Positions 40,618 to 64,000 of a DNA stretch of 64,000 bases are shown here, piece after piece (positions within the stretch are counted from its first letter, which is position 1; each line of letters opens with the position of its first letter). Position numbers and translations under genes: made by a program. Source of the DNA: Basidiobolus meristosporus CBS 931.73 (Eukaryota; Fungi; Basidiobolomycota); assembly GCA_002104905.1 (NCBI GenBank), contig MCFE01000253.1, positions 49,596-113,595 of the forward strand, in the 5' to 3' direction. The notes beneath the pieces were generated by a model. The model ran no database searches. It saw only the letters and a program-made list of their open reading frames with translations, and was not told the origin of the DNA.

Positions 40618-42991
40618 ATGTCGTTAGATGAACTTCGCCCCTTGGGCATTCAGTGCGAGTTTCCAAAAGACGACTTCTACATAGGCACACCACCAACTGG
40701 GCGAAATGATACCAGAGAAGGCCCCTCTGCCTCGAATCGAATTAGCCAATCTACCATCGCACGTTCAGCTAGAATCGGATCATCACCACAATTGAACGGC
40801 CTGGAAACGACTAAGGAAACCGAGAGGGATCCTTCAGGCCAAGTGCGTCAGGTCTCGAAATGCCACTCACTAGAAAGGATCAGCAAAGCCTCGCATGCCA
40901 GTCCCGTACCCATACGCAGATCAAGTAAACCCGAAATGGCGTCGAATCTTACCAAGACAAATCACCCTGGTGTCGACGCGGTCGGCTGCCTGATTACTCA
41001 AGTCGACGCTCTTGATCTGACGCCAAGTGCAGAAGATTCGGAAGCTACCACAAAGAAAAATCCCGCGAGCCCTGATAGTATGCTTGGGTCAGAAGAGGAC
41101 CCTTTCACCACTGATACAGAGTCAGTGGAGAGCGAAAAGGCTCCAATGACCCCTTGCTTCATCGAACATGATAGTCTTTTCAAGAGCAACTGGGCTACCG
41201 ATAACAACGCCAATTGTACTGATGATGGAGATTTCTGGGTCTCAATAGTGGAGAATTACTCTTATAATGCATCCAAAGTGTTGCATCAGTATGTAGTTCA
41301 AGCTCAGCAGGGAATTCCTCAACGACTTCGCGGGGTCTTATGGCAGACCATGTGCCATGGGCGTTCGACCTATCTCGAGACTATGTACAACCAGTTGCTG
41401 CACGAGCCCAGCCCCTACGAAAGAATAATAATAAGGGATCTACCAAGGACATTCCCAAAGCTGGACATGTTCAAAGACCAAGGCGGGGTAGGCCAAACAA
41501 GGCTCTTTAACGTCATGAAGGCGTATGCAATATACGATGACGGGGTCGGCTACTGTCAAGGGATGGGGTTTCTGGTAGGGCCTCTGCTTATGAATATGCC
41601 AGAGCGCGAAGCATTTTGTGTATTTGTGAGGTATGGAAACATTGTGTAGTCGAATGCCGCTATTTCCTTGGCTTAATCTTCTGGAAATAGATTGATGGAA
41701 GACTACGGTATGAGATCCATGTTTACCAGAGAAGATGGAAGGCTTAGAGTTAAGGCTTTATCAGTTGAACTCTCTACTCTCGTCAATTCTTCCGGACCTC
41801 TCTCGACATTTTCACGAGCACGGGATAAATACAGGGATGTTCGCTTCTCAATGGTTTCTGACTTTGTTCGCCTACAGCTACCCATTACCATTGGTGTTGC
41901 GTATTTTCGATATTGTCTTCGCTGAAGGAGCCGCGGAGACAATAATGCGCGTTTCATTGGCATTGCTCAGGCGTAGCCAAGAGAAACTGCTAAGCATGAG
42001 TGAATTTGAAGACATCATTGGATTCCTGAGCTTGCATTTGTACGATTCTTTCGACAATCCAACCGAATTGATCCAAGATGCAATGTCTTTAAAACAAACC
42101 ATTACAAAGCAGAGGTTGGAGTCCTTAGCACAGAAATACTCCTTTGAAGGAGACGCCAATCGCAAATCGGCGAAAAAATCAATGCTAGGCTGGAGGTGGA
42201 TGCTGAAGGAGCAGAGAGTAAAGATGAGTTCTCCTGCGTCATCACGTCCTGCTGGCAGTATAGAAAATATGCCAACCGACGCGGCTACCAACCCTACCTC
42301 TGAGCCGAATGCATGAAATTGGAACTACACAATCTAAGGGTGACTGCTGAGACATACACCACAGTCCTAGGGCAATTGCGCGAGGATAATACACAATTAA
42401 CATGCAGAGTTGATTTCGATCAAAGCATCAAAGTTTTGCATAGAGGAAGAGAACGAGGAGCTACGCGGGCATCTTCAAGGCATGGAAACATCTAAAAAAC
42501 GAGAGCTTGAGGAAAAGAAACAAAAAGACGATGTGATAGCCAATTTAGAGCAAGAGCTTGTGGCAGCCAAGCTTGCCCTGGCAGAGGCAGCGTCCGAAAA
42601 AGAGAAGCTGAAGAAAAAACTACGTGGCTTAAGGAGATCGACCGTGGAGTTGGGAGCGCTTCAAAGGCATTCTGATAATATCACAGTCCCATCCCAAGCC
42701 ATATCAAAAGAACAGTTTTTCTCCAGAGGGACGAAAAGTCTGGAACAGACTGCGCCTATGCGACGAAGTCTCGACGGCCAGGGTTGGTCACTGCCAAGCC
42801 CCACTAACCCACATTCCATCACAAATATCTCACACCCGTCCTATGCAATCTCTTCAGAACAGAATTCCTTCACCTCTAGACTGACTGGGTATTTACCTAC
42901 CATTAGGAAGGCAAAAAGAAGCTCCTTGTCGGCTAATTACTCCTATTCGTCGATATTTGAGGAGGAATATCCGCCTTGGAAAGGCATTTAG
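40618..42991 (+). CDS. Rab-GAP TBC domain plus coiled coil (GYP5/EVI5-like), with apparent frameshifts
   Basis: GIPQRLRGVLW, IIRDLPRTFP, VGYCQGMGF, FASQWFLTLF. Frame breaks near 41727, ~42310 and ~42400. Confidence 0.88.
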
Positions 42992-46727: not shown

Positions 46728-48008
46728 ATGTCTGACAACGTAGTTCACGCTTTAGCTGGTTAGTACCGGACCCAACCTTGCTGGAGCCTTGCCAACTAAC
46801 TCTTTGCAGGTGCCGGTGGTGGCATTATCTCCATGCTGCTTACCTATCCTTTGGTCAGTATCAGCTCTCGTCTTCAGGTGCAAAAAGACACCACAAGCCC
46901 CGATTCCTATAAGGTAATCCGTTTCTCCTCTGTGCTTTTCGGTAGCTTCTACTTACCGTTTGCTCTACCAATAACCCTTCAAGGACGGCGTGGATGCTTT
47001 CCAAAAAATTCTGAACAAGGAGGGTGTCCCTGGACTCTACTCGTAAGTTTCCCACCTGTGTCTACTTTCTTGGGGGCATTTACCGAACAGCAGGTTTGCG
47101 CTTCTCCAGTGGCTTGAACTCGGCACTCTTCGGCATCGCCGTCACAAATGGTAAGGCCTTTTGGGCTGCTTTATCTGGAAGTATACAAACCCTGACCTAT
47201 TCCTGGTCTGCTCAGGTGTCTATTACTTTTTCTATGAGTGGACCAAATCCACTTTCGAGAAATCCTCCAAGAGCAAGGCCTTAAGCACCGGGCAAAGCAT
47301 GATTGCCGGTGCCATCGCTGGTGAGTAATTGATGAGCATATAGGGTCCATTGGTATTCTGGATATTCACAAACGGGAATTATTAGGTGCTGCTACTTGTA
47401 TTACTACCAATCCTATTTGGGTGGTGAATGTAGGCGCTTTACTAAAAATATCTATTCAAGACCTTTGCTCATCAGTTCCCCCTCAATAGACCCGTTTAAC
47501 AACCAAGAAGTCATTCACCGAGGGTGAAGGTGAAGCTCAGCCAATAGGGGCCCTTGGGACGTTGATCCGCATTATCCAAGAAGATGGTGTTGCCTCGTTG
47601 TGGCAAGGCCTCGTCCCAGCCCTCTATCTTGTGGTCAACCCAGTGATCCAATATACCGCTTTTGAGCAGGCCAAAAACTGGCTCGCCAAGCGCAAGGGCA
47701 AGTTGGGAAATGCCGACTTCTTCCTTCTGGGAGCCTTTAGTAAGCTTATTGCCACCAGTCTCACATATCCATACATTGTCATCAAATCCCGGATGCAATT
47801 GAAGCAGTCCAGTGATGAATCCCAACGCTACAAGTCTGTCTTGGATGGCTTCCGAAAGGTATTGAAGCACGAAGGAGTTGCTGGACTCTACAAAGGCTTG
47901 TACTACAAGTTGGTGCAAAGTGTACTTACCGCGGCCTTCCTTTTCATGGCCAAGGAATCCCTCTTCAAGTATACTTTAAGACTCCTTATGTTGGCCAAGA
48001 TGAAATAA
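46728..48008 (+). CDS. PMP47/SLC25A17: Peroxisomal mitochondrial-carrier-family transporter, multi-exon
   Basis: MSDNVVHALAG|AGGGIISMLLTYPL; TNPIWVVN|TR; LVVNPVIQYTAFEQ; TYPYIVIKSRMQ. Confidence 0.9.
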
Positions 48009-48367: not shown

Positions 48368-51300
48368 ATGACCGAAGGTGCCCTGTCCGTGAATGAATCT
48401 GTTGTTTCTGGTGGAGGTATGTGCAAGCGTGGCGCGGGCGAGCGCACATTCACTAAAGCCCATTTTAGAGGAACTCTCCGAAAGATACCAAAAGCTCTTT
48501 CGTGAGTACTCAAGGTTTGAGGATTACGGCTTCTGGGAGCCTTCCATACTTCCCGACTGACCCAATCTAACTCGCCCTCTGCTGCAGAATAAAGGCCCAA
48601 CACTCGGTGCTGAAGAAAGCCATCCTCAAGGTACTCCTCTCCCCGTTCCCTCTTGCTCGTCAGGGAGGACTATGGCTGCGTGCACACCCGTGTGGTTCCC
48701 CGTTTAACCCCCTGTCCTTTAGGAACAAACCCAGAATTCCGAATTGTCCACCGAGAACAAGTCCAAGGAACAAGAGCTTCGCAAAGTATACTCACCCACG
48801 GCGACTTTTTTCTTCGCTCCCCGGCTTACTTGCTCACCGGAACCACTTGATAGGTCTTACAGCAGCTGGACACCTTGAATTTCCATAACCAACGGCTCAC
48901 CAAACGCGTAGAGGATTTGCAGCGGAACGGGTCCCCGGTACGGCATCTAGTCTACATCGATTCTCGCCCCAAACGAACCCGTTTCCTCTTCTCGTCCTTT
49001 CTCATCGCTTTATGTTCAGAAATTAGGGGGACAATGGTTACTGCGGGCCTCTGCCAAGAAGGAGCTGGAAAAGCAAAGGATCACCCTAGAGGCGACGACA
49101 TTGGATTTACAAGGGAAAATCGAGGAGAATGGTATGCGCGGGTTCGGTATAGATCCACCAACAAACCGACCAGGCTAAAGAGTTCATCAAATCGTAGAAA
49201 ATCTGCACAAGGAGGTGTATGAGATCCATAGCCTGTATACCGAGCAGTTGAATGTGTATCAGAAGAAGGTGGATGAGTTGGAGAATGAGAAGAACCTTTT
49301 GAATGTATGTTGCGGCGGCATTATCGGGTGAAGTATGTACTGATCAATGGATCCCAGGAGGAGCTGGTCAAATGCCAAATGGTGAACGAGAATTCGGCCC
49401 AAGCCCTGAGAAGTCAGAAGAAGGACGCCGAGCTGGAGATCAAAAAGATCCGCGAGGACCTGAACAAGTAACTGTTGAGCCATTCCTCCTCTATTCGTAA
49501 ATCGGCAGGCGTTGATTTGTTTATCGACAGAACAAAAGAGAGCCTGGCCGGCCTTCGGGAGAACATAGCGGAGAAGTCGAAGCTACAGGCGGAGGAGGTT
49601 GCGGTCGTTAAGCGACTATCCACATCTCTGCACCATTACGATCAGCTCTATGAAAGACTATTTGCACATGATCCCAAGGTACCGATTCACATAACCGCGG
49701 GGCTGTCTGAATGCTAACACCTCTTTAGTCTGGCTGTAGAGCGATCTTCAACCAGTGCTCTGATCTATGGTCAGACCTGATCAAAAACGCACAGCTCGTC
49801 GAGGTTCCCCGTGATCTACAATATCTCCTGGTGAGTAGTGTTTGACCCTAGCCCTAGCTCCAGCTCTAACGTATTGGCTCAGAACTTTGAGACCTCGTCG
49901 TTTGAGGAATATCTGATTAACGAGCACCTCCCGGTTGGCCATGGGAAGGGCACAGATGTAAGTATCGATCTTGGTTTCTCCGAGGAAGACGTTAGAGACT
50001 AACGTTGGCTTAGGAGAATATCGTGGTCGCAGTCCAGGCTGTACTCTCCATATATGATAGACTGTTGCAAGTTGCGTGCGAGAAGTAAGTAAGCTCATGA
50101 TGGCCCCTGTTTACCATGGCTAATCCGTGATTAGTTTACCAGACGCGACTCACCTTCACAACCGGAATGGTAAGCTGGAAAAGGTCCCGTTGAGCGAGAG
50201 CTTTTCGGAGTTCGTCGCGGAGTTCTTCACACAAGGTATGCGTATATGTCGACTAACCGGTAGACTTGTTCTGACTACACGCACAATTCCAGCCGCGGTG
50301 CCACTCGACGACAAGGCTCGGGAGAGCTTGCTTGACAAACTGGCCGCAGTTCGCATCGGGATCAAGAGTAAGAGAGGTGCCATTCTTTCGGGTGAATTTC
50401 AACTAAACCACCCCTTTGTAGGTTACATTCAAGTCAGCACAGCGGACTCTACACATCACGTGCTCTTGAGCTCCTTAAATGAATGCAGCGGTAAGAGCGC
50501 AAAGGATTTTGTGGAGATTTGACTCTCATCTATCTTCCGTGTAGACCAGCTAAGCGGAGCCATTCAGAGCGTATTGTTGACAAATCCCGACCGAGTTGGT
50601 TCGGAGGAGACGGTAAGGCAGAGACGAGTGAGAGGAGGTTTATGCGAGCTACGGTTAACATCACTTCACGATCTCAGATACCTGACTCCAGCCAGAATGT
50701 CTGGAAGGGAATCGAGGACGCATTCCAGGAGAGCCTATCCTATCAACAGACCCTGGTGTCGAGATTGGCCGTCCTTCAAAGTAGAACTTGAGATCCAAGT
50801 CTCCCCGCATGGTCCCATTTTAAACAGATTTGAGTTTAGGAGAAAGCTCAAACCTCATCCGGTCCAATGCTGACCTGCGTTCTCGTCACGAAGAGTTGCA
50901 ACGGGAATCGGCCGCGCAAAAAGATAGAGCCTCGCAGCTAGAATCGGAGGTGAACAGCCTCAAGGCAATGATCGCTGAGCGCGAGGTAACTCTAATGGCC
51001 TGGACACTAGCCGCAACCACCATCTGATGCTTCTCGTCTACAGAGTCCCGAGGTTCTCGACCAGGTGGAGGACCCAGAAGCGCAAGTCGAGAGAGTCACT
51101 GCCGAGGCGTCCACACAGACAACAGAGGTATTTGAGGTGGTGCAGTCTCAGGCACCAGTTGCCAATGGGGTTGTATCGTCTGGCGATGAGGCTTCGGTGG
51201 TATCCCCTTCAGGACAAGTAATACCAGGTTACTTACGCAGTGACACATGCCGTGGATTCATTTGTTATGGTTACAGAGCGAGCCCGAGGAAGACTTGACG

Positions 51301-51892
51301 GATAACAAGGCGATCAACGGATCGTCGTTGTCATCACCTAATCAGCTGGTAGGTTACGGGAGGCACACTTCATGAAGGTTATCATACTCACAGGGGGGGG
51401 TTCTAGGATCCAGATCAAATGACTAGAGAAGATCTCATCAAGCGGCATTATGAGGGCAAATTGGCACAGCTGCTAGAACGGGTGAGTTTTGTAAATATTG
51501 GCCAATCCGACGGCACCCACTAACACGAACTTGCGGGATAGTCACAAGAGGCAGACAGCCAAGCCCAGCGAATGCGCAAGGTGTGTCAAAACTTGGTTCA
51601 GAAGCTGGAAGCCTCCGAGGTGGAGAAGAAAACCATACAAAAGCAACTTGACGAGGCTAAGCAGCATGTCACAAGAATCCAGGTACATACACGACCCATT
51701 GATGAAATCCGACGAGTAGCCATAAACTCACGTGTTGTTAGGACGAGCTTCGTACCACCGAGGAGAATTACAAAGCGCAGTTGGACATGATGACCGAGCG
51801 TAAGTGCTTCCCCTGTGTTACCACATTTGGTGATTTGTTGCTTACTGTTTCCTATAGATATTGCACAGCTCACTGCAAGCATTCCACAGTAG
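48368..51892 (+). CDS. PPP1R21: PPP1R21-like coiled-coil protein (KLRAQ and TTKRSYEDQ motifs), multi-exon
   Basis: RYQKLFREYSR|IKAQHSVLKKA; LDTLNFHNQRLTKRVEDLQ; REDLIKRHYEGK; DELRTTEENYKAQLDMMTE. Confidence 0.8.
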
Positions 51893-52055
51893 CTTCATTA
51901 ATTTCCCAATTTTGAGTGTATTCCCTCTATATCAAGCTTTCCAAAATAAATTACCATTGTACTAAATATAGCATTTTGCAGTTTCAAGGGTGTGATAACT
52001 CTTTTTGGGCCTTTTCAAGCAAATTTCTGCTGAATTCAAGATACACAGTTAATGC

Positions 52056-52242
52056 TTAGGGGGGGGGTGACATACACCAACAGGTGAAATCTTTGTTTCA
52101 CTAACTCAAAATAAAGAAGCCAAGTGCTACAAGGGTAGCTTTTTTACAAGCAAATACAGAAGGTTCATTTTGGGAAAGCTGATAAGAAAGATCCCTAAAT
52201 TTATGTGGAGTTTAAACAGAGTTGAATGCTACTGGAGGGAAA
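52056..52242 (-). mobile_element. Module E: 3' end of a decayed telomeric LINE (third family)
   Basis: TTAGGGGGGGGG junction plus shared tail (CACC-AACA-GGTGAAATCTTT...AAAGAAGCC). Minus strand encodes PPVAFNSV*TP, similar to the ORF2 C-termini of families A (PPFPLNSVLST) and D (PPKPLNFIFTP). Confidence 0.75.
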
Positions 52243-52354
52243 AGTAGAATATGTGGTTTTCACTTGATGATTTATTGAATGTAAAAGTAGTATTTATACT
52301 TTCACATGGTCTTGGCATAACAAACATGTAGAATAGGCTTAGGAAGGTCCCAAG
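52243..52354 (-). repeat. Internal fragment of the copia LTR
   Basis: Matches the interior of the adjacent LTR; lacks both LTR termini. Confidence 0.85.
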
Positions 52355-52703
52355 TGTTGTAAGAGTCTTGGAGATATTGGAAGTGATTGGGAGAGCAAGT
52401 AGATTATTTGGTTTTCACTTAATGATTTATTGAATGTAAAAGTAGTATTTATACTTTTACCTGGTCTTGGCATTACAAACATGTAGAATAGGTTAAGGAA
52501 GGTCCCAAGAGTACATGTGCAAAGTTTGGGGCTGTTTGGACATCTTTGAGAATTTTCATGTTCTGAGTACCTGGTATTTTGGTGAAAATATTCCAAGTAA
52601 ATCCCAACAAGGAATTTGGTCAGTATTCTCTAGGATTTGAGGGTAATGATCTAAGTGACTAAGTTAGGTCAATATTTAGGTGGAATTACAAATTTTTACA
52701 ACA
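52355..52703 (-). repeat. Ty1/copia 3' LTR (349 bp)
   Basis: TGTTG...CAACA termini; PPT TAAGCGGGAG adjacent on the minus strand; same family as 1181-1528. Confidence 0.93.
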
Positions 52704-52714
52704 CTCCCGCTTAG

Positions 52715-54190
52715 CTAAATGCTCATACTGACTAGTCCTAATTTTGACCTAAGATATTCAAACTTGTCTCTAGCTAATGGTTTGGCAAATATGTGTGCAA
52801 TCATTTCACCTGAAGGACTGTAAACTAAGCTAGCTAAGTTATTCTCTGTAGCTTCACATATGAAATGATATCTAATATCTATGTGCTTGGCTCCAGTATG
52901 AAAAGTTGGATTTCTACCTAATTGTATGCATCCTTGATTATCTTGAAATAGAGTAATAGGCATTTTTCAACATAGGCCTAAATCTGTAAAAAGCTTTCTT
53001 AACCACATTGCTTCTTTTGTAACTTCACAGGCTGCCATGTACTCTGCCTCTGTGGTAGAAAGTGCTACAGTTGGTTGCTTTTTTGAATTCTATGAAATTG
53101 CTCCTTTGCAGTAAACAAAGGTGTATCCTGTGGTTGATCTTCTGTCTTCCAAGTTATGTCCCCAATCTGCATCAGAGTATCCCATTAGATTCTGGTCTGA
53201 ATCCTTATAAGTGTATCTCAAGTAGATATCAGCAGTTCCTTTTAGGTATCTAAAAATCCGCTTAACTGCTGCAATATGATCCAATCCATAGTTCTGCGTA
53301 TGTTGGCTGACAACTCCCACTGAATATGAGATATCTGGACATGTTCCAAGCATGATATACATCAGACTGCCAGCCATAGATTGACAAGGAAAGTCAGGGC
53401 TTTCAGATGGCACCAAGCTCTCTTGATTTGGTTGAGTTTTGACCAAGTTAAGGTCTGTCTCCATTGGGGTAGCTGCCAGCTTACAGTCTTCCATTTGGTA
53501 CTTCTTTAGTATATCTTGAATATACTTGGATTGGCTTAGGGTAATAGTCTGAGTACTTCTGTCTATGGAAAACTTAATCCCTAAGTAGTAACTAAGTTCT
53601 CCTAGATTGGACATCTTGAACTCCTTAGATAGGCTGGATTTAGTTTCTTCCAATGTTTCTAGTTTATTAGTGGCTATAATAAGAACATCCATATTTAGAG
53701 CTGATAGAACTGGACTTGCTCTATCTGGCTTATAGTATATACTATAGTCAGCATTACTCCTTTTGAAACTCACAGATTCCAAATAAGAATCTATCTTGCA
53801 ATTCCAGGCTCTTGGTGATTGTTTGAGACCATTTAGTGACTTTATAAGCTTGCAGACCAAATGGGGGCTATCTTGATCAACAAAACCATCAGGCTGGCTC
53901 ATATACACATTTGTATCAAGTTCTCCATTCAAAAATGCAGTTTTTACATCTATTTGATAAATAAAAAACTTATATTTGGCTAAAATAGCCAATATTAATC
54001 AGATGGAATTAAACTTGGCTACTGGTGCAAAGGTCTCAGTATAGTCAGGTCCTTTTGCTTGAGAGTATCCTTTGGCTACAAGTCTTGCCTTGTATCTTTC
54101 AATTGTACCATCAGCCTTGTAATTTGTTTTGAAGACCCATCTGAATCCAATTGATTTTTGGTTGATTGGTAATTTGACTAAGTCGCAAGT
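52715..54190 (-). mobile_element. Ty1/copia RT-RNase H pseudogene, truncated at the start of RT
   Basis: [63 protein letters not shown]; three stops; YVDD decayed to NMDV. Confidence 0.93.
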
Positions 54191-54194
54191 TTGG

Positions 54195-54234
54195 GTCAGG
54201 GGGAGGGAAAGTCACCAAGGTAGGTGAAATCTTT
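54195..54234 (-). mobile_element. Module C0: ~40-bp tail-only stub
   Basis: GGTCAGGGGGAGGGAAAGTCACC-AAGGTA-GGTGAAATCTTT joined to the broken copia. Confidence 0.8.
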
Positions 54235-55320
54235 AGGGGGGAGACAGTCACCAACAGGTGAAATCTTTATTTCAGTTGAAACAAAGAAGCCAGCACTACT
54301 GTTGTAGCTTTGTTACAAGAGTGTGTAGCTGAGGGGAATTTGTAGGTAAGTTAATAAGAAGTGATGATAGCTCTTCAGTGCTCAAGACACTGTTCAGTGG
54401 GAAGGGGGGTAGCAAGAGAGGTAAGAATGACTTGTGAACAACATTAATGGGGGGAATGTGATAAGGATTGATATTCATCATAAAGGGAGTGTGCTGCTGC
54501 AGATATTGCTGCCAAAGGTCTGTCAAGTACTTCAGGTAGGCCAGCTTGGGTTTTTCTGACTGCAGAATATAATGAGCAAACTTCTTGACTTCAGGATCTC
54601 CAAGTATAGTTCTCCAGCAGAAGCCAGGTGTTGTGTGGTGTGTTCTCTTCCAGGCCTTAATCAGTGGGTTGTTGCAGTGGTGAAGTCTGAGGTATAATCT
54701 TGTTCTAAGGTAGAGAAGTCTGATCTTATAGGGCATAAACCCAAAAGCACCAAGAATAGCATGTCTGTAGGGGCATTCAGGCAAATGAGGCACTAAGGAG
54801 GTAATGCACCATACTGCAAACTTGTCAAGCTTAGTGCAGTCTCTAGAAGTAAGAGAGAGAAGTGGTAAGCCAAATTCCAGGACCGGGAAGACAAACTGCT
54901 TGAGTAGAAGGAGGCAGCTGGGAGCTGAAGTTGTAGGAGGAGTAACAGCCAGAAGCTTGTGGAGTGCCTGTCTTGCCAGGATAATTCTCTTCTTCAGGTG
55001 TGCTCCAGAGTCTAGTCCAGTAGGAAGGAAAGGAAAGCCAAGATATGTAGCAGAAACCTGAGCAGGTAGAGTGGAGTTCTCCAAGTTGATGGGAGAGCCC
55101 AAAGGTACTGTCTTTGCAATGGAAAGCTGGAGATTATTCTTCTGCAGATACTGGTGGATGGTCTGGGAGTCTTGTTGCACATTGGAGGAGGATATTCTGA
55201 TGTCATTAGCAAAGAGAGTAACCAGGCAGTCAGCTGAGAGTCTTGGGAAATCATTCAGGAAGATGGCAAACAGTATAGGACCAAGCACAGAGCCTTGAAC
55301 CACTCCATTAGGAGCTGAGA
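54233..55320 (-). mobile_element. Module A1: 5'-truncated telomeric LINE, family A (RT C-terminal part)
   Basis: ORF 54296-55303: NGVVQGSVLGPILF, FAND (decayed F/YADD), YLGFPF; homologous to ORF2 of D; shared tail; 5' end capped by AGGGTTAGGG. Confidence 0.92.
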
Positions 55321-55324
55321 AGGG

Positions 55325-55850
55325 TTAGGGGGAGGAAAGTCACCAAGTGGTGAAATCTTTATTTACTTATGACAAGTATCTAAAGAAGCCAAGTTAATCT
55401 GAAGTAATTCCTAGAAAGCTAAGTCTGAGAGATATCTTCCTGGTAAGCCAGGTCTGAGAGTTGAGAAGCTGATTGGTACTATATTTTCTAGTTAGCTAGG
55501 TCTGAGAGAGGTTTCCTGGAAAGCCAGGTCTGGGAAGTGAGAATCTGAATATATCTGAGCTAACTTATACTGGTTTGCGGTAGCTGAATTGTGGCCGGAA
55601 TGGCCAGCAGACTGGGGGAACTGAGATGTATTTCTGGGCAATCACTGGCCAAATTTACTAGGCAAATCTGGCCAATTAGCATTTCAAGGATTTCAGCCAA
55701 TCAGAGCCTTTACTTTGCCCGATGGTTGATCAAGCCATCTCCCAATGAGCACACATCAATTTATTAATCAAATTTTGTTGGATCCAGGATTTGAACCCAC
55801 AACCATGGGTATGGAAGGGTTAGGGATAACCACAAGGCTAAGTGTTCTGG
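55325..55850 (-). mobile_element. Module B1: full-length tRNA-derived SINE (~525 bp)
   Basis: A box TAGCCTTGTGG (55830-55840) and B box GGTTCAAATCC (55787-55797), 32 nt apart; non-coding body; LINE-type shared tail. Confidence 0.85.
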
Positions 55851-56379
55851 TCAGGGGGGAGGAAAGTCACCAAGTGGTGAAATCTTTACTTACTTATGAC
55901 AAGTATCTAAAGAAGCCAAGTTAATCTGAAGTAATTCCTAGAAAGCTAGGTCTGAGAGATATCTTCCTGGTAAGCCAGGTCTGAGAGTTGAGAAGCTGGG
56001 TGGTACTATATTTCCTAGTTAGCTAGGTCTGAGAGTGGTTTCCTGGAAAGCCAGGCCTGAGAAGTGAGAATCTGAATATATCTGAGCTAAGTTATACTGG
56101 TTTGCGGTAGCTGAATTGTGGCCGGAATGGCCAGTAGACTGGGGGAACTGAGATGTATTTCTGGGCGATCACTGGCCAAATTTACTAGGCAAATCTGGCC
56201 AAGTAGCATTTCAAGGATTTCAGCCAATCAGAGCCTTTACTTTGCCCGATGGTTGATCAAGCCATCTCCCAATGAGCACACATCAATTTATTAATCAAAT
56301 TTTTGCTGGATCCAGGATTTGAACCCACAACCATGGGTATGGAAGGGTTAGGGATAACCACAAGGCTAAGTGTTCTTGG
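55851..56379 (-). mobile_element. Module B2: second full-length SINE copy, tandem to B1
   Basis: About 14 differences from B1 counted by eye; A box 56358-56368, B box 56315-56325. Confidence 0.85.
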
Positions 56380-56546
56380 TTAGGGGGAGGGAAAGTCACC
56401 AAAGTAGGTGAAATCTTTATTTGATTTCAGACAAGTCTAACTACAAATAAAGAAGCCAGCTGGGAATAGAAGATTCCCAAAGTAAACAAAAAGTTGAATA
56501 TGAATAAATCTAAGCTAAAGTTAAGGCAGTATCCCAGAGTACACTG
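56380..56546 (-). mobile_element. Module C1: 3' end of a non-coding tail-bearing element
   Basis: TTAGGGGG junction, stem-loop tail with AAAGTA loop, ACAAATAAAGAAGCC motif shared with D; no ORF2-like translation. Confidence 0.7.
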
Positions 56547-57243
56547 TGTTGTATCCAAGAGAAAGTGTAATAAAACTCTTGAATGGTTTAACTGAACCAA
56601 AGGGACAATCAAGTGCAGAATCTTAGAATTGTCAGAGAGTGGCGGAAATATTAGCAGAAAGATTCTGATCTAATATTGGTCTTGGATATAGCTGGGTTGG
56701 CTATAAAGGCAATGATATTTGTTTGCTAGGCAGGCTAGGCTTGGTGTTCTTTGGAGTGCTAGATATACTAGGCTTGGATAGAAACTAGAACGGAATTGTT
56801 GGATTCTTATTTTTGCTGAGACAGAATCTTAATTTTGTTGAGACACACACTAAACCAAAAGGTTCAGTACACTTAATTTATACTTTTCTGATCAAGTTGA
56901 ATTAGTAAGCACCAAGGGACTGGATTGATTGAAATCAATTTGGGTGTTCTTTGGTGCACAAGATAAATGAAAATTACATCGTCAATCAACTGATGTCTTG
57001 GCAACTGCACAGTGGTTGGATAGATCTCAGATGACTAATCACCTGGGAAGGCTTGGCAGATAGGTTGATAACGTGATGACCATTTGAAAATAGATCAGGT
57101 GTGATAGCTAAAAATAGATTCTGAGGTGGGATCAAATAAACTGTAACTGGGATTTGTTATGTTTGGGTTAGGGAAAATCAGTTAGGGTGCTAGATTTTCA
57201 AACGGAGTAAAATTGGCAAAGTTTTAAATGTTGATGCACAACA
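56547..57243 (-). repeat. Putative 3' LTR of a Ty3/gypsy chromovirus (~697 bp)
   Basis: Begins TGTTGT directly after the pol stop and purine tract AGAAGGAAG; TGTTGT inverted terminus at 56547. The far boundary is inferred. Confidence 0.6.
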
Positions 57244-58900
57244 TCACTTCCTTCTGGAAGAGGAGTTTTTTGATACCTTCTGGGTTCCTCTGCGGCTGCA
57301 ATACTGATTGATAATGGCAACATCATCAAAGTTGGTGTAAGGTTCCCAGGTGTTGTGTTTGGCATCATAGCCTTTCCACTTGACTAAATAAAGGCAATTT
57401 GGTTCTTCTCCATCATGGTCCAAAATAACTTCAACTTCATAGGATTCTCAAGTTACTGGGTCTTGAGAAATAGGTTTGAGTGAGGAAGGTGGAAAGTTTT
57501 TGGGTAGCAGTGCTCCAGTGTTATCTTGAAGTACATAAGATCCTACAGTAGTGCGTCTGACAACCTTGAATGGTCCTTCATACTTGGGGTCAAGCTTAGA
57601 TTGCCGGATTGGATCTAGTGTCATGACATATGACCCATTTGGGAAGCTGCTGTTCCTGTGTCTTGAGGCATATGTTGAAGTCATCTTTTGCTGAGAGGCC
57701 TTACTTCTGGCACTGATAGCAGGGTAGACAATGTTGGTAAGGTACTCAAGCCGGTTCTTTAGCTTATCTGTATTCAAACTTGCTAACTCTGTATTCTGGT
57801 AGTCTCCAAAGTGGTTGTATCTTCTTCCAAACATCAAGGAAAATGGGGTTGATCCATGTAGAGCGGCAATTTTGGTGTTGATAGCATACTGTACAGTTGG
57901 AATGTACTTGTCCCAATTCTTCTTGATACCTTTGATAGATTTCCTGATGATGTTCACTGAGGTCTGAACATGTCTTTCAGCCAGTCCATTAGCTTTGGGA
58001 TGATATGGAGTGATCAGACGATGATCAATGGCGCTATTCTGGCAAAGGGCTTTGATCACGTGATTCACAAATTCTGTTCCACTATCCGATTGAATGACCT
58101 TAGGGAATCCAAAAAGGCAGAAGAGCTTGAATAGTTCTTGTGCAATAGTGGCCACATACTTGTCTGGGATGGCTTTGAGGAAGACAAAACGTGTGCAGAC
58201 ATCCACAATTACAAAGAGGTAGTGATTACCATCATTGCTAGTGGTGAAAGGTCCAGCTAGATCAATTGCAATATGATCCATAGGAAGGCTTGCATGGATG
58301 GGGCTCAAAGGGTGAAATCCATGGCGGCTGATATTGTAAAGTTGACATTCTCTGCACAACTTGACAAATTCTAAGCAGTCAACTTTGATATTTGGCCAGT
58401 GATATCCATCAGAGTGTAGCTTCTTCATAAGTGTATCAGCTCCAAAGTGACCAAGTAAATGACCCCTCTGTATCAATGTTTTCCTTTGTTCTTCAGGTGG
58501 GATTTTCCAAGTTGCTGAATCCAGTTGAGGAATTATTTTGGAAGTTGTAGAGAGTTTACTGATTACATCAGTAATCACATGTCCCTCCCAAGGTGAAGTT
58601 GGAAAAAGTCTTGACAGGTGGTCAGGAAGGATATTGAGAATTCCTGTGCAATGAATAACTGTATATTCATAATCAAGTAGAGTATCAAGCCAGTTGGTAA
58701 GCATTGGAGTCAGAGTCTTCTGAATGTGGATATAGACAAGGGCTCGGTGGTCAGTGTACAAGGTAAAAGGATTACCCCATAGATACTGATGAAACTTCTT
58801 CAAGGCAAAGACTATGGCAAGTAGCTCCTTCTTGGTAGCAGAGTAGTTTCTCTCAGCAGGTTGTAGGGACCTGGCCTGGAAAGAGATCCAGTGAGGCGGA
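57244..58900 (-). mobile_element. Ty3/gypsy chromovirus pol remnant: RNase H, integrase and chromodomain
   Basis: ISFQARSLQPAERNYSATKKELLAIV; HHCC finger; DHIAIDLAGP, QSDSGTEF, NGLAER. After a TGA at 57448: ESYEVEVILDH...YLVKWKGY...NTWEP. Confidence 0.93.
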
Positions 58901-59018
58901 TTAGGGGGGAGACAGTCACCAACAGGTGAAATCTTTATTTCAGTTGAAACAAAGAAGCCGGCGCTACTGTTGTAGCTTTGATACAAGAGTGTGTAGCTGA
59001 GGGGAATTTGTAGGTAAG
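58901..59018 (-). mobile_element. Module A2: ~118-bp 3' stub of LINE family A
   Basis: Near-identical to the 3' end of A1 (54233-54348). Confidence 0.92.
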
Positions 59019-59044
59019 GGTTAGGGTTAGGGTTAGGGTTAGGG
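59019..59044 (+). repeat. Interstitial telomere tract GG(TTAGGG)4
   Basis: Read directly; caps the truncated A2. Confidence 0.98.
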
Positions 59045-59179
59045 GGAGGAAAGTCACCAAGTGGTGAAGTCTTTATTTACTTATGACAAGTATCTAAAGA
59101 AGCCAAGTTAATCTGAAGTAATTCCTAGAAAGCTAGGTCTGAGAGATATCTTCCTGGTAAGCCAGGTCTGAGAGTTGAG
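59045..59179 (-). mobile_element. Module B3: 5'-truncated SINE (~135 bp)
   Basis: Matches the 3' part of B1/B2; capped by GGTTAGGG. Confidence 0.92.
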
Positions 59180-59269
59180 GGTTAGGGGAGGGAAAGTCAC
59201 CAAGTTGGTGAAATCTTTATTTGAGTTAAGAACTAATCTAGGTACAAATAAAGAAGCCAATTAAGAGGT

Positions 59270-62119
59270 CTAGAACCTCTCTAATAAGTAATCTAATTTA
59301 TGTTTTGTTTCATCTCTTATGTTTGTTTCAATAAAGTAAAGCTCATCAGGGGTAAATATAAAATTCAGGGGTTTTGGGGGAAGTACAAATTGTAGATGTT
59401 TCTGATCAATATAATCCAAGACTGGAACCCAGCCTGGGATTAGGTGTAGTAGGAAAGGTGTGTGGACTTGTAAGTAGCTCTGCCACATAGATCTTAGATG
59501 GTCCTGAGCCAGTAGTCTTGGTTTCTCAGCTTTTTGAAGTTTTGAAGCAAGCTCTGTTACTACAGCAGAGCCAACCAGGGTGTGCCAGCAAGAAGATTTC
59601 AGGGAGGAGTTAGATTGAAGCCATTGTTTGATGGAGGGGTTATGTGATTTCTGAAGTTTGACTAGGAAGGAAGCACGGAGATAGACCATTCGGATTTGGT
59701 ATGGGTAGAAGCCAAAGGCTCCATTAGTTGCATGGATATAGGGAGATACTGGAAGATAAGGTACCAAGGATCTGATACACTGATGGAGAAATTTATCCAG
59801 GCGGTGAAGTTCTCTGGAGGTTAGGGGTATAATGTGGAGACCAAACTCAAGTACCGGCAGTACATACTGCTTCAGAAGTATAGGGATCTTTTGAATTGGA
59901 GTGTCTGGAGTGACTACTACCAGAAGCTTTTTGAGAGCCTGTTGAGCAAGACGGATCCTATTATTCAGGTGGAGCTTTGAGTCAATCCCATGTTGACAAA
60001 ATGGCAGACCTAGATATATTGCAGTTTGTTGTGGCAGAATGCTAGTGTTCTGTATAGTTGTAGTGCATCCAATTGGGACTGTCTTGGAAATTGAGAGTGA
60101 GAGGTTGTTGGCAGCCAAGTACTTCTCAATGATGGCAGTGTCTGCTATGGGATTAGGAGTAGCAATCTTGATATCATCCGCATAGAGAGTTAGTAGTGGA
60201 TAGGGAGAGTCTGGTGAGGGGCCTTTTGGAAATAAAGGAAAGTCATGTAGGAATATCACAAATAGTAAGGGACCTAGTACAGATCCTTGGACTACTCCAT
60301 TTGGAACCTCATAAGTCTCTGATGTACAACTTGGATGCAAAATTTTGGCTGAGTTCTCACAAAATAGAGAACGTACAAGAAGGGTCATTGGTAGTGTGGT
60401 AACTGCTAATAGCTTTCTCCAAAGCAGAGCTCTGTCCACAGAGTCAAAGGCTTTAGTAATGTCAAACAGAATGGTTGGCAATGAGAATTGAAGTGAATGA
60501 TCATGGCTTAGCACTACAGCCATATCCAAGGAGAGTTTGGGCAAGAAGCCAAACTGAGAAGGATGGAATGGATATAGTTGAGATTGCAAGGATCTTGCAA
60601 TTATAAGCTCAAAGATTTTCCGGCAGGTTGGCAGGAGTGAAACTGGCCGGTAAGAACCTGGGAGTGAGTGTTTCCCCTTCCCTTTGTATAAGGGTATTAC
60701 ATTTGCCTGTGACCAGGCCTTTGGGGTAGTCAATTGTTGGGCACAGATAGAGTAGAATGGGAGAAGTAAGTGACTCATTTTGGAGTAGCACACCCGGAGT
60801 AGATCGTAGGTAATCAAGTCATGTCCAGGTGCAGTATTTGCAGGAAGCTTCTTTAAGATTTTCTCCAGAAGCTTTGCTGAAACCAAAATTGGAGATGTTG
60901 GACTGCTAGATATGTTACCAGTATGGTAGAAAGGAGGAGTGGGATGCACGGTTGAATCAAAGAATATAGGGGCCAGTTTGTCTGGTGATGGTATACTCCT
61001 TGCTTGGGGTCTCATGGCTTTATATACTCTTGATATGGACCTTGTGGTGGCATTCATATTTACTAAGGGCAAGGTATCCATGATATGAGCCCATAATCTA
61101 GTGTGCTCAGTGATCTGTAGTGACTTGGAGTAGGAGATTGCGCTTTCCAGGAGGTTCTGTGTTTTTGGGTTAGGGAAACATAGGTAGCTGGAATTTAAGG
61201 CAGAAATGATGGATTTCCATTTAAGTTGGTTTGCAGATGGCTTTTGGTAGGACTTGGTGGGCAGGGCCAGACAGCCAGTGATTATGATGAAATGCTGGTA
61301 AAATAGCCATAATGCATTTATATCATCACAAATCCATGCAGGTAAGCTGGGAAATGCATATTCTGTAAGCAAGGATAGGTAGTTGGCAAAGTCCTGTGTC
61401 TGTGATACTGAAGCTTTGGCTGGCAGGATTGTAAATGGCTGAAGAAGGGTGCCAATTGGTAGGGTTTTTCTGGCAGAAATGATAATATGTATTGGCTTGT
61501 GATCAGATTTCTCTAGTGAACCACAGCTGATATCCTCTGGAATGCTTGTAACCTGGTGGATGTATTGTAAGGCAGCTGGAGTAGCTGTTACCCAGTCAAC
61601 ACAACGTTGAGCTTGCTGAGTGTTTACAGTGACCAGATGGTTTTGTCGGAGGAACTTTGTAAAGTGCTCCTCTCTAGTTCTAAGTCTGGATGAAATAGTG
61701 GTGATATTTTCAGGGTGGGGAATATTTATATCTCCCACTACCATACAAGGGATTGATGAGCTGTTAATGAATTCTGATGTGGCCAAGAAAATTGCCAGTG
61801 TTATGGAGTTAGACAGAGATGGAGGGAGATAGATAATAATGGCTACTATAGTTGGAAGTGTTAGAGCATAGCAGTAATACTCATAGATGATGGATACATT
61901 TGCTGAGGGTGCAAGCTTAGAAGATGAAAGAGCAACAAGTGCCATTGAGTGAGCTGGAAATCTTGGGTGAGCAGATGAATATGCATTCAGTCTAGAGGGA
62001 AGTTTTGGCAACTTAACATCAATTAGTAGGAGCAAAGAATATTCCTTTTTCAGTAAGTTTTCTAATTCAGCTACAGTTGGAGTGATGGAGTTGCAATTGA
62101 GTAAGAGTATGTTTTGTAG
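59270..62119 (-). CDS. LINE ORF2: APE endonuclease plus reverse transcriptase (no initiator ATG before the EN domain)
   Basis: EN: ILLLNCNSI, LLLIDVK, YLPP, VVGDIN, CVDW, SDHKP. RT: APGHD, YRPVSLL, QFGF, FDITKAFDSV, QGSVLGP, YADD, YLG. Frame is open back to the ORF1 stop. Confidence 0.95.
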   Translation of the reverse strand, partial: LQNILLLNCNSITPTVAELENLLKKEYSLLLLIDVKLPKLPSRLNAYSSAHPRFPAHSMALVALSSSKLAPSANVSIIYEYYCYALTLPTIVAIIIYLPPSLSNSITLAIFLATSEFINSSSIPCMVVGDINIPHPENITTISSRLRTREEHFTKFLRQNHLVTVNTQQAQRCVDWVTATPAALQYIHQVTSIPEDISCGSLEKSDHKPIHIIISARKTLPIGTLLQPFTILPAKASVSQTQDFANYLSLLTEYAFPSLPAWICDDINALWLFYQHFIIITGCLALPTKSYQKPSANQLKWKSIISALNSSYLCFPNPKTQNLLESAISYSKSLQITEHTRLWAHIMDTLPLVNMNATTRSISRVYKAMRPQARSIPSPDKLAPIFFDSTVHPTPPFYHTGNISSSPTSPILVSAKLLEKILKKLPANTAPGHDLITYDLLRVCYSKMSHLLLPFYSICAQQLTTPKAWSQANVIPLYKGKGKHSLPGSYRPVSLLPTCRKIFELIIARSLQSQLYPFHPSQFGFLPKLSLDMAVVLSHDHSLQFSLPTILFDITKAFDSVDRALLWRKLLAVTTLPMTLLVRSLFCENSAKILHPSCTSETYEVPNGVVQGSVLGPLLFVIFLHDFPLFPKGPSPDSPYPLLTLYADDIKIATPNPIADTAIIEKYLAANNLSLSISKTVPIGCTTTIQNTSILPQQTAIYLGLPFCQHGIDSKLHLNNRIRLAQQALKKLLVVVTPDTPIQKIPILLKQYVLPVLEFGLHIIPLTSRELHRLDKFLHQCIRSLVPYLPVSPYIHATNGAFGFYPYQIRMVYLRASFLVKLQKSHNPSIKQWLQSNSSLKSSCWHTLVGSAVVTELASKLQKAEKPRLLAQDHLRSMWQSYLQVHTPFLLHLIPGWVPVLDYIDQKHLQFVLPPKPLNFIFTPDELYFIETNIRDETKHKLDYLLERF

Positions 62120-63778
62120 TCAGGCAGACTCTGAGGTTGCCTGTTCCTGCTGAAACTCTTGCACTGCCCTTTGTAAATTTCCAGAATTATTCCACAACTC
62201 TTCAAATGGAGCTTGTGTAATGTCTTTCAGGATTCTAATTGCTTCCTCTTTCAAGAAGTAGGCCACATCATAGGTTGGAGCCTGTTTCTTAATGGCAGCA
62301 AAGAAAGCCATAATTGCCATGTGAGCTGGGGGCTTGTTGAATATTCCTGGCTCAGTGTCCATTGACTCTGGTGGAATGATTGTGAATTTGGTAGACACCC
62401 AGTTTAGATTTTTTGCCAGATACTTAGTCAATGCAGTGGAGAAGTTTCTGTCCACAATCATTTCTAGGATCTTTCCTCTTCTCCAAGCTAGGTTAACAAT
62501 TTTTGAAGTGTCAATATTTAGAGAGCGGAATGTATGTCTGATGTTTGATATAGTAGTCCATGGAACATTGGCAAAGTATAGCAAGGACCAATTCTGGAGC
62601 TGAGGTAAGTTTGCTGGAGGCTTATAGGTAGACTTCCTGGCAGGTTGTGTGGTAGGCTTTAGTGTTTCCAAGGTAGCAAGTTGTGGTTGAGACTTTTTAG
62701 AATTACGTATGACTTTGGAAAGAATTCTGCCAGCAACTGTGTCAGGAATGTTAGTACTTGTTGATGGTGCAGGGCCTGGCTCCTGGTACTGCTTTTGTAG
62801 AATACTTGAGTATGTCTCTTTTTGTTTTCCTTTATCCAAGGTGCTATGCCTTGGAATGGGATTTTGGGGAATAGAGACTTCAGGTATCAACTCTGGGGTC
62901 TGGTGATTGTCCAACACTGTTGCTTGAGCTTCCAGCTTTTCCTCTAAGATTTGAACTCTCTGCTTAAGCTCATCATTTGACGCTATAAGTGTGGCATTGT
63001 TTGGAGCCAGGTCAGGTGTTGAGTTATGAAGGCAGGTTGAGCAGCATTCTAACTCCTTTGTTTGGTCATCCAACTTTTCTTCTAAGGTTTGAACCCTCAA
63101 TTTGAGTGCACCATTTGAGGTTAGAAGCTCCAAGTTATCAGCCTGCAACTTCTTTAGATCCCTAAATATCTCAAATATCTGTGCCTGCAAGTCTTTAGCA
63201 GTGATATTTCTGATGGGTACTATTTCCTCTAGGAGTTCTTCTTGAGCCAGGTGAGCATTGGGACTTGAGCACTCTACTGAAGGAGTTGCTGGAATTTCCT
63301 CAATGTCTGACAAAACTCCTTCACTTGCAGCATCAGTTGTATGATTATCCTGAGTAGCAGCAACAACCTCAAGTTCACAAGGACCAGTTGAAGTAAAACA
63401 TTTCTTGGGTGGGACTATCTCAAGAGGCTTGGGTGGGACTTTTGCTTTGAATGGTGAGGTACTAGGATCAAGAATTGGGACTGGGACAGAAGCTATGGTG
63501 TCTATTTCAGCAGCAGTTGCTGTAGAGCTACTGGGGCTCTGACTGGCTGGTTTTTTGGTCTTTGCCTTCACTCCTGCTACCAACTGGTCAAGACCACAAA
63601 TCTTTGTACAGGCCTTGCATTGGACCTGCTTGACCTTATTCTTGCCAGCACGGCCATTGAGCTTCCATTTGCCTCTGATACCACAGGCAGTGCAGTCAAG
63701 TTTTGAATACCATCTTCTGAAGAGAGTCAGATCCTCTTTTTCCTCACTGGTAAGAATCACCTTACTTTGTGGAGGCAT
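62120..63778 (-). CDS. LINE ORF1 (552 aa): N-terminal C4 zinc finger, coiled coil, C-terminal putative RNA-binding domain
   Basis: CTAC-x21-CKAC; heptad-like LQADNLELL...LKLRVQTLEEKL; position upstream of ORF2. Confidence 0.85.
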   Translation of the reverse strand: MPPQSKVILTSEEKEDLTLFRRWYSKLDCTACGIRGKWKLNGRAGKNKVKQVQCKACTKICGLDQLVAGVKAKTKKPASQSPSSSTATAAEIDTIASVPVPILDPSTSPFKAKVPPKPLEIVPPKKCFTSTGPCELEVVAATQDNHTTDAASEGVLSDIEEIPATPSVECSSPNAHLAQEELLEEIVPIRNITAKDLQAQIFEIFRDLKKLQADNLELLTSNGALKLRVQTLEEKLDDQTKELECCSTCLHNSTPDLAPNNATLIASNDELKQRVQILEEKLEAQATVLDNHQTPELIPEVSIPQNPIPRHSTLDKGKQKETYSSILQKQYQEPGPAPSTSTNIPDTVAGRILSKVIRNSKKSQPQLATLETLKPTTQPARKSTYKPPANLPQLQNWSLLYFANVPWTTISNIRHTFRSLNIDTSKIVNLAWRRGKILEMIVDRNFSTALTKYLAKNLNWVSTKFTIIPPESMDTEPGIFNKPPAHMAIMAFFAAIKKQAPTYDVAYFLKEEAIRILKDITQAPFEELWNNSGNLQRAVQEFQQEQATSESA

Positions 63779-63859
63779 ATTTGCAATTTCCTAAAAAAAA
63801 AAAAAAACACCAAAAGTGGGGGAGGAATCTTTTAGTTGTTGGATGTTAGTCTCTATGGC

Positions 63860-64000
63860 TTAGGGTTAGGGTTAGGGTTAGGGTTAGGGTTAGGGTTAGG
63901 GTTAGGGTTAGGGTTAGGGTTAGGGTTAGGGTTAGGGTTAGGGTTAGGGTTAGGGTTAGGGTTAGGGTTAGGGTTAGGGTTAGGGTTAGGGTTAGGGTTA
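63860..64000 (+). repeat. Terminal telomere (TTAGGG)23.5
   Basis: Perfect repeats to the end of the window, G-rich strand pointing outward. Confidence 0.99.

Follow-up and report, generated by a model that had tools for sequence, protein, structure and literature searches.

We analysed a 64-kb stretch of DNA from the fungus Basidiobolus meristosporus CBS 931.73, hereafter the window, and confirmed the earlier observation of a one-way array at its right edge, which is the end of a contig (C539, 113,595 bp). At 52055/52056, unique gene-bearing DNA is joined directly to a chromosome-end array in which units of long interspersed nuclear elements (LINEs) and of a short interspersed nuclear element (SINE)-like partner, fragments of long terminal repeat (LTR) retrotransposons and short telomeric joints are stacked up to a perfect terminal telomere. 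The elements lie on the minus strand, with their 3' ends facing the gene-bearing side and their 5' ends the chromosome end. The core of their 3' tag, CACCAA-N(2-6)-GGTGAARTCTTT, has nine matches in the window, all on the plus strand and all in the last 12 kb (at 52075, 54213, 54249, 55341, 55868, 56397, 58917, 59055 and 59198); positions 1–52000 hold no copy, and 100 dinucleotide-preserving shuffles gave 0 matches. Counted from the telomere-like hexamer that precedes each tag, the nine modules start at 52056, 54197, 54233, 55325, 55851, 56380, 58901, 59039 and 59182. The hexamer reads (T)TAGGG(G)n at seven of the nine and TCAGGG at the other two (54196 and 55851), and poly(A) is absent from all nine junctions. 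In coordinates, single strand, TTAGGG/TCAGGG joints and perfect terminal telomere this layout agrees with the first-pass annotation, the count of tags being exact with none elsewhere in the window.

The array opens with a degenerate, old unit (module 1, or 'A'; 52056–52355, minus strand like all features below unless stated), a B-like 3' end whose tag carries a G9 run and which is 79% identical to the 3' ends of LINE family B. Its stretch 52239–52354 resembles part of the LTR of the neighbouring copia-type fragment (52356–54196), which retains a 3' LTR (~52356–52706) and part of pol (Pfam RVT_2, E 1e-44). A 36-nt unit made up of the tag only follows (module 2, 54197–54232), and on its terminal TTA (atctTTA/GGGGGG, at 54232) begins the 3' 1.09 kb of a LINE B (module 3, 54233–55324). 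Module 3 holds the tag and the C-terminal 335 aa of open reading frame 2 (ORF2; Pfam RVT_1), in which the reverse transcriptase (RT) motif FADD is mutated to FAND. Next come two full-length SINE-like units: a non-coding one of 526 nt (module 4, 55325–55850), in which a B-box-like GGTTCAAATCC marks the head, CCCTAACCC lies internally and the 3' tag is the shared one, and a second copy of 529 nt (module 5, 55851–56379) joined through TCAGGG. Module 6 ('D'; 56380–56546) holds 167 nt from the 3' end of a lineage related to E and is interrupted by the terminus of a gypsy LTR; its first 80 nt are 87.5% identical to the tail of LINE E, and 95% copies occur on C14 and C25. Beyond a gypsy-type fragment (56547–58900) with a 3' LTR, integrase and RNase H (Pfam RT_RNaseH, rve and Integrase_H2C2) stand a B tail unit of 118–120 nt (module 7, 58901–59020), an internal telomere tract, (TTAGGG)4 (59021–59044, plus strand), which is the sole window junction with more than ~1.5 units, and the 3' 143 nt of the SINE-like element (module 8, 59039–59181). 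The outermost unit is a full-length LINE E of 4,678 nt (module 9, 59182–63859), capped directly by perfect (TTAGGG)23.5 that runs to the contig end (63860–64000, plus strand). Three of the nine modules, numbers 4, 5 and 9 (the LINE of 4.68 kb), are full length; 5' truncation or interruption affects the remaining six.

Ordinary genes lie within 4–11 kb of the array, a RabGAP-TBC gene (40618–42313, plus strand) and a mitochondrial carrier exon (47562–48005, plus strand), so there is no long gene-poor subtelomere. The flank proximal of the first tag (50000–52055) is single-copy in the genome. GC skew is strongly positive (0.18–0.31) over 52000–64000 compared with ~0 in the gene region, because the elements all run one way.

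Genome-wide mapping of the tag and of the ORF2 region that encodes an APE-type endonuclease fold bore out the proposal that these elements keep to the ends of chromosomes or contigs and to a single polarity. The tag occurs ~1,580 times in the 89.5-Mb assembly (1456 forward and 127 reverse), and on the six contigs of known size (C1, C2, C3, C14, C25 and C539) 33 of 33 tags fall in the last 22 kb. A search with the APE region returned 142 matches of two kinds, ~140 of the 142 on the minus strand. Family E has ~50 copies; at least 17 keep the 949-aa frame intact, many are 99–100% identical, and some on other contigs match the APE region of the terminal copy in the window at 100% identity. Family B, at 40% identity to E, has at least 90 copies with a 922-aa frame, dozens of them intact. 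For 134 APE matches on ~124 contigs (5–345 kb), match coordinate tracked contig size rank with a Spearman rho of −0.998, so the LINEs lie close to the right contig end, at a distance that hardly varies; contig sizes were inferred here from the contig indices, which follow the lexicographic order of size-ranked scaffold numbers, as checked on six anchors. Among the copies examined we saw no internal copies and no target-site duplications. By this confinement to contig ends in a single polarity, most contig sizes being inferred, the elements belong to the functional class of telomere-specific retroelements.

These elements coexist with TTAGGG caps, as had been claimed. Besides the terminal tract in the window, C1, C2 and C25 end in 190–213 nt of TTAGGG set on elements truncated at 0.2–2.7 kb, and C935 carries a match to Telomerase_RBD, the RNA-binding domain of TERT. 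We estimate that the genome assembly holds 200–350 telomere-bearing contig ends.

LINE E in the window retains full coding capacity. Its 81-nt 5' untranslated region (63779–63859) contains a T15 run, and its 5' terminus is common to C435 and C1283 and is reached by only three of nine compared copies, including that of the window. In the 552 aa encoded by ORF1 (62123–63778), a zinc-ribbon-like motif (CxxC...CxxC) at the N terminus is accompanied by a coiled coil and a C-terminal domain; ORF1 has no Pfam family match. A single in-frame UGA (62120–62122, context GCC-UGA-CUA) separates ORF1 from ORF2, a 949-codon open frame (59273–62119) with an APE fold at ~61472–62116 and an RT (RVT_1) at ~60071–60673. 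The RT matches Pfam RVT_1 at E 1.5e-20, keeps an intact catalytic YADD and has human L1 ORF2p (E 1.5e-11) and R2 as its best matches in PDB. Domain searches of ORF2 found no RNase H, restriction-enzyme-like endonuclease (REL) or CCHC domain, and even at E 10 nothing in Pfam matches its C-terminal 276 aa.

The first-pass annotation had placed an APE domain at the N terminus of this RT protein, and the fold upholds that placement where sequence evidence is weak. PF14529 matches at E 3e-4, under the curated cut-off, and a profile built from family members only matched nothing in PDB at E≤1. A mixed profile matched PDB entries that include the TRAS1 endonuclease (1wdu, E 9e-8); it contains bona fide APE LINEs, and we did not count its strong match to the L1 endonuclease as evidence. 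Two AlphaFold2 models of the region, from the mixed alignment and from family members only (predicted local distance difference test 80.8 and 77.3), both match APE1/ExoIII with a Foldseek probability of 1.0, E ~1e-10 and TM ~0.58. The motifs N, Y, GDxN, D and SDH are kept, and the metal-binding Glu is Asp in all family members (E, B, P0002 and P0003; LIDVK, ORF2 residues ~28–32, window ~62020–62035). We rest the assignment on fold and motifs because the sequence matches fall below curated cut-offs; modelling establishes an APE fold for the ORF2 N terminus, which makes it a predicted endonuclease. With an RVT_1 RT that has an intact motif, an N-terminal APE fold, no LTRs, variable 5' truncation and a defined 3' end, the elements belong to the APE-type LINEs.

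Searches beyond this genome recovered few close relatives. A word-indexed protein search returned five at 44–65% identity, and an exhaustive HMMER search of 1.84 billion representatives returned ~7 clearly above generic LINE RTs (28–33% identity), three or four of them strong at 52–65% and the rest short, partial or probably fused models at 29–46%. On short-read contigs of other samples, the closer relatives show the same tag followed by CCCTAACCCTAA, and on two relatives' contigs (L034 and L051) units are stacked. The same tag and the same stacking in other samples argue against an artefact of this one assembly. The next nearest LINE (P0006) is without such a tail.

The UGA between ORF1 and ORF2 recurs in seven lineages: E in the window, family B on C3 and the relatives on L031–L035 and L051. 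In all seven the two ORFs stand in one frame, interrupted by a single UGA in the context GCC/GCA-UGA-CUN (in relatives at L031:905, L032:1666, L033:2112, L034:2669 and L051 ~1452). The APE domain starts 3–5 codons past the UGA, usually without an AUG (4 codons in LINE E, without one). Because this arrangement is conserved at 36–65% protein identity, programmed stop-codon readthrough is probable. UGA readthrough is unusual for LINEs. We also considered a non-standard genetic code for the in-frame UGA and rejected it: the stops in the copia fragment are mixed (TAG at a conserved Trp, and TGA), and the UGA context is specific (GCC-UGA-CUN).

Five families, A–E, had been proposed. Several lineages and non-autonomous partners do exist, but what had been called modules A and D consists mostly of LTR-retrotransposon debris (copia at 52356–54196 and gypsy at 56547–58900). 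The set reduces to two autonomous lineages (E and B), diverged related tails (~79% identity of A to B and 87% of the D tail to that of E), plus a single SINE-like element. As RNA, the LINE E tag (59182–59264) reads GGCUUCUUUAUUUG as hairpin 1 and AAAGAUUUCACC-loop-GGUGAC as hairpin 2, continues C-rich and closes with CCCCUAA; it folds with a z score of −4.1. Families A–E and the relatives from other samples have one 3' layout in common: GGCUUCUUU..., hairpin 1, AAAGAUU(U/A)CACC-loop-GGUG..., a C-rich stretch and CCCCUAA. Both hairpins are exact in five of seven folded family tails, and the two-hairpin structures reach z −2.5 to −4.1. One relative's tail has the same two hairpins plus a spurious 2-bp helix; the degenerate tail A folds otherwise, keeping the CACC/GGUG stem, and is not significant (z −0.8). 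The inner stem and loop of hairpin 1 vary in sequence and length among families with pairing maintained, and the CACC/GGUG stem of hairpin 2 is invariant. To judge from sequence and predicted folds, such a shared tag is the usual signature of a stringent-type LINE 3' recognition element borrowed by its SINE.

The SINE-like unit is short and non-coding, its 5' end is defined and its 3' tail is that of the LINEs, as in a SINE. Its 5' terminus, CCA(A)GAACAC, is the same in the window, on C2 and on C25, and its tag architecture is identical to that of the LINE tags. The head contains the B-box-like GGTTCAAATCC and an A-box-like TTAGCCTTGTGG; ARAGORN called no tRNA in it, Rfam gave no tRNA match at E≤1 and minimum-free-energy folding was no better than for shuffles. 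Between the A-box-like and B-box-like motifs the head also holds GGGTTAGGG (CCCTAACCC in sense), at 55817–55825 and 56345–56353. GGGTTAGGGAAA is present too at 61167 within ORF2 of LINE E and at 57165 within the 3' region of gypsy.

The two LTR fragments bear on the history of the end. Both lack their 5', telomere-side part, and the following tag caps each break (54196 in copia and 58900 in gypsy); the missing halves do not occur in the more distal part of the window. Their LTR termini (TG... at ~52356 and ~56547) adjoin other sequences on other contigs, the gypsy terminus meeting a different sequence on C1, which indicates that copia and gypsy inserted themselves into elements already in place and that their telomere-side halves were lost afterwards. 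These truncations fit what terminal loss followed by re-extension would leave. Further copies of the copia element, and solo pieces of LTR, lie on C14, C25 and C3, some in one orientation and some in the other. The copia copy in the window has decayed, its pol carrying in-frame stops, a TAG at a conserved Trp (AIS*NSKKQ, 53085–53092) and a TGA further on (~52966). Two side observations concern LTR sequence: a direct repeat (52242–52357 and 52397–52512, spacing 155 nt, 92% identity) lies in and beside the copia LTR, and LTR-like pieces of ~117 nt stand between B tails on C2 (253936 and 254149).

Junctions carry further information on how units were added. Among 34 distinct junctions, TTA is found at 32 and TCA at two; G occupies position −1 in 21 of the 34, and at least GGG lies upstream in 12. 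Two or more extra full repeats are kept at just one of the 34, which argues against insertion into long tracts. At some junctions, such as that at 54232, the new unit begins on the TTA that closes the one before it. The breakpoints in copia (54196), gypsy (58900) and unique DNA (52055) show no telomeric target in the disrupted sequence. B copies come nearer to their family consensus towards the telomere, going from 1.81 to 0.18% on C1, from 1.29 to 0.83% on C2 and from 1.01 to 0.00% on C3. Full-length SINEs adjoin each other with a single unit between them, which suggests end-to-end template jumping or re-priming on a bare end. Junctions, terminal loss, age gradient and SINE joints together favour priming on the end of the G strand.

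We therefore read this chromosome end as one built from telomere-restricted APE-LINEs and their SINE, primed on the G-strand end alongside telomerase, and put the probability of this reading at roughly 60%. The E and B lineages would mobilise themselves, their diverged relatives and the ~526-nt SINE-like passenger. Their RNAs are predicted to end in the two-hairpin tag, a C-rich sequence and CCCCUAA, the complement of the telomeric G strand. When a telomere shortens or is lost, erosion would at times eat into the outermost element or into LTR elements inserted there. Next, 0–6 nt at the 3' terminus of the G strand would pair with the terminal CCCUAA of the RNA while the ORF2 protein holds the RNA through its tag, and the RT would copy the RNA outward, leaving the element's 3' end facing the centromere. 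A further RNA would then be copied directly, through end-to-end template jumping or renewed priming at the bare end; alternatively, telomerase would cap the end with 140–210 nt of TTAGGG. Later recombination between chromosome ends would spread blocks of the stack.

Several observations weigh against this reading or narrow it. The first-pass annotation had taken the polarity of the array to match priming on the G-rich strand; the polarity stands, but priming is deduced from static junctions, and APE nicking of TTAGGG would give the same orientation. A conserved APE domain is unexpected if natural ends serve as primers, and with the family-wide Glu-to-Asp change at the metal site the predicted endonuclease may or may not be active. 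That the putative transcript ends in CCCUAA is predicted from genomic DNA. The age gradient of B copies rests on few copies, and the rank correlation depends on contig sizes that are inferred from six anchors. Telomeres are also strikingly one-sided in this assembly: (TTAGGG)6 has 6728 forward and 68 reverse matches, nearly all telomeres are at right contig ends and no listed contig has a telomere at its left end, a pattern that could come from an assembler convention or from one-ended contigs.

Block sharing between ends weighs in the same direction. Window 54233–59026 corresponds to C2:254779–260104 at 98–99% identity, with the FAND mutation common to both; the block contains three SINE copies on C2 and two in the window, and the two ends differ both proximally and distally of it. 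Part of the layout is therefore due to recombination and not to retrotransposition. The block would have moved between ends by duplication or recombination, or would predate their split, and nine modules are then not nine events at this end. Of the earlier proposal that this end was extended repeatedly, the one-way array survives, but the block shared with C2 means that the modules were not nine separate additions here. The short B units raise a related point. A 118-nt unit with the same truncation point (...GTAGGTAAG) occurs three times in tandem on C2 (259993, 260113 and 260233; L043), and full-length B reads GTTA at that point. Such units could reflect a microhomology re-priming hotspot, a discrete mini-element or tandem duplication, and their being cut at one identical point could speak for the last of these.

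The competitor that fares best is insertion in the manner of TRAS and SART of Bombyx mori, in which the APE domain would nick the G strand within TTAGGG, in tracts or in the unit that precedes a tag, and target-primed insertion would follow with no need for end erosion. We consider it unlikely, though it carries real weight. The APE fold and most catalytic motifs are kept across lineages that are 36–40% identical, which implies selection on the domain; a G-strand nick predicts the observed polarity; every junction offers a TTAGGG-like unit as a potential target; and the tract at 59021–59044 shows that some additions lie beside several repeats. Insertion into a tract should, however, leave repeats on both sides, as in Bombyx TRAS and SART, and the retention of two or more extra repeats at only one junction in 34 does not fit this. 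Nor do the junctions at 54196, 58900 and 52055, which lack a TTAGGG target in the disrupted sequence and whose missing halves are not found distally, and the metal-binding Glu is replaced by Asp throughout the family.

A second competitor holds that a few old retrotranspositions were spread by break-induced replication, unequal crossing-over and gene conversion, and that telomerase alone maintains the ends today. The 4.8-kb block shared with C2 (two versus three SINEs, FAND in both), the tandem B units of 120 nt and the recurrence of copia pieces at several ends are what it would predict. We nevertheless judge it improbable as a full account, given the intact frames of at least 17 E copies (949 aa) and dozens of B copies (922 aa), many with 99–100% protein identity, and given that the terminal E copy of the window is full length with both ORFs and YADD intact. 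Blocks also diverge distally into different next elements, and truncation points and junctions differ between ends.

Wrong appending of telomere-bearing repeat reads to right contig ends would account for the orientation bias (6728 against 68 telomere matches and 1456 against 127 tags) and for the many ~20-kb contigs that are arrays only, but is very improbable, given that short-read contigs from unrelated samples (L034 and L051) have the same tag-CCCTAA-next-element junctions, that junctions are base-precise and differ between ends, that the 12-kb array is within the span of a single long read and that its flank is single-copy.

A further step may be taken, tentatively and with the odds somewhat against it: this early-diverging fungus may possess a second, retrotransposon-based means of end extension beside telomerase, in which APE-LINEs and their SINE, with an RNA 3' end of CCCUAA that resembles a telomerase template, heal eroded or uncapped ends and a conserved UGA readthrough yields an ORF1–ORF2 fusion. 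Such a system could serve the host as a back-up healing device, and would represent a living intermediate between telomerase, Drosophila-type telomeres and parasites of the TRAS/SART type. Retrotransposons dedicated to telomeres have been described in a few lineages, and the known systems each hold part of the combination, namely an APE endonuclease (Bombyx), end attachment (Drosophila) and telomere-repeat tails (endonuclease-free Penelope-like elements); here all three meet in one fungal genome, with a telomere-specific SINE in addition and telomerase alongside. End priming would also offer a tractable microbial system for a LINE RT that acts like telomerase and for the sharing of telomere maintenance between host and element. 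With ~1,580 tags and more than 120 contig ends, the elements shape a sizeable part of the genome's architecture and explain the fragmentation of the assembly at chromosome ends.

Comparison with known telomeric retroelements places this set apart from each of them. TRAS1 and SART1 of Bombyx mori (R1 clade) are likewise APE-type LINEs with ORF1 and ORF2, restricted to telomeres, accompanied by a telomerase-type repeat and able to recognise the stem-loop in the 3' untranslated region of their own RNA. The tails of TRAS and SART are poly(A), and their insertion site is one fixed nucleotide in long (TTAGG)n tracts, with repeats on both sides; here the tail is the telomere unit itself, junctions hold ~1–1.5 units, ORF1 is without CCHC, a UGA lies in frame and the host is a fungus. 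The lack of poly(A) at the nine window junctions and fewer than two extra repeats at 33 of 34 junctions distinguish the elements from TRAS and SART. HeT-A, TART and TAHRE of Drosophila also form one-way, head-to-tail end arrays with 3' ends towards the centromere, variable 5' truncation and autonomous and non-autonomous partners. Drosophila has no telomerase and its telomeric elements join through oligo(A), whereas here we find a TERT-like gene, TTAGGG caps and a junction that is an element-templated telomere unit.

Athena and Coprina carry reverse-complement telomeric repeats at their 3' ends, thought to anneal to the G overhang, and lie at chromosome ends in one orientation. They have a Penelope-like RT without an endonuclease, in contrast to the LINE-type RVT_1 RT, APE-fold domain and ORF1 described here, and have only the telomeric 3' end in common with our elements. 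In stringent-type LINE/SINE pairs such as eel UnaL2 and UnaSINE1, the SINE has the same 3' stem-loop and short repeat tail as its LINE, features that the RT recognises, and the RT of L1 can prime on dysfunctional telomere ends independently of an endonuclease. The set in the window differs from both in that its short tail is the host telomere repeat and that LINEs and SINE together are confined to chromosome ends.

Among fungi, MoTeR1/2, FoTeR and Cnl1 are non-LTR elements confined to telomeres or subtelomeres and found in 5'-truncated stacks, as here. MoTeR1, Cnl1 and FoTeR belong to the REL-bearing CRE/SLACS/CZAR clade (2025 FoTeR paper, PMC12857005), in line with the earlier statement that the known fungal telomeric non-LTR elements are of REL type. 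Elements of this clade have a single ORF with a REL endonuclease C-terminal to the RT (PMC12857005); in ORF2 of the window the APE fold is N-terminal and no recognisable domain follows the RT. Two ORFs, the N-terminal APE fold and a C-terminal 276 aa without a Pfam match separate our elements from the CRE clade. In rotifers, Hebe is subtelomeric with an APE domain and a poly(A) end, and a chain of Athena elements lies at a telomere (PMC2861651). Full-text searches turned up no paper on telomeric retroelements in Basidiobolus, SINEs specific to telomeres or APE LINEs tailed with telomere repeats, so a telomere-dedicated retrotransposon system of this kind is apparently unpublished. In the Atlas, the look-alikes are described only as 'APE+RT LINE', and unnamed clusters of ORF1 look-alikes are commonest in Zoopagomycota and Mucoromycota.

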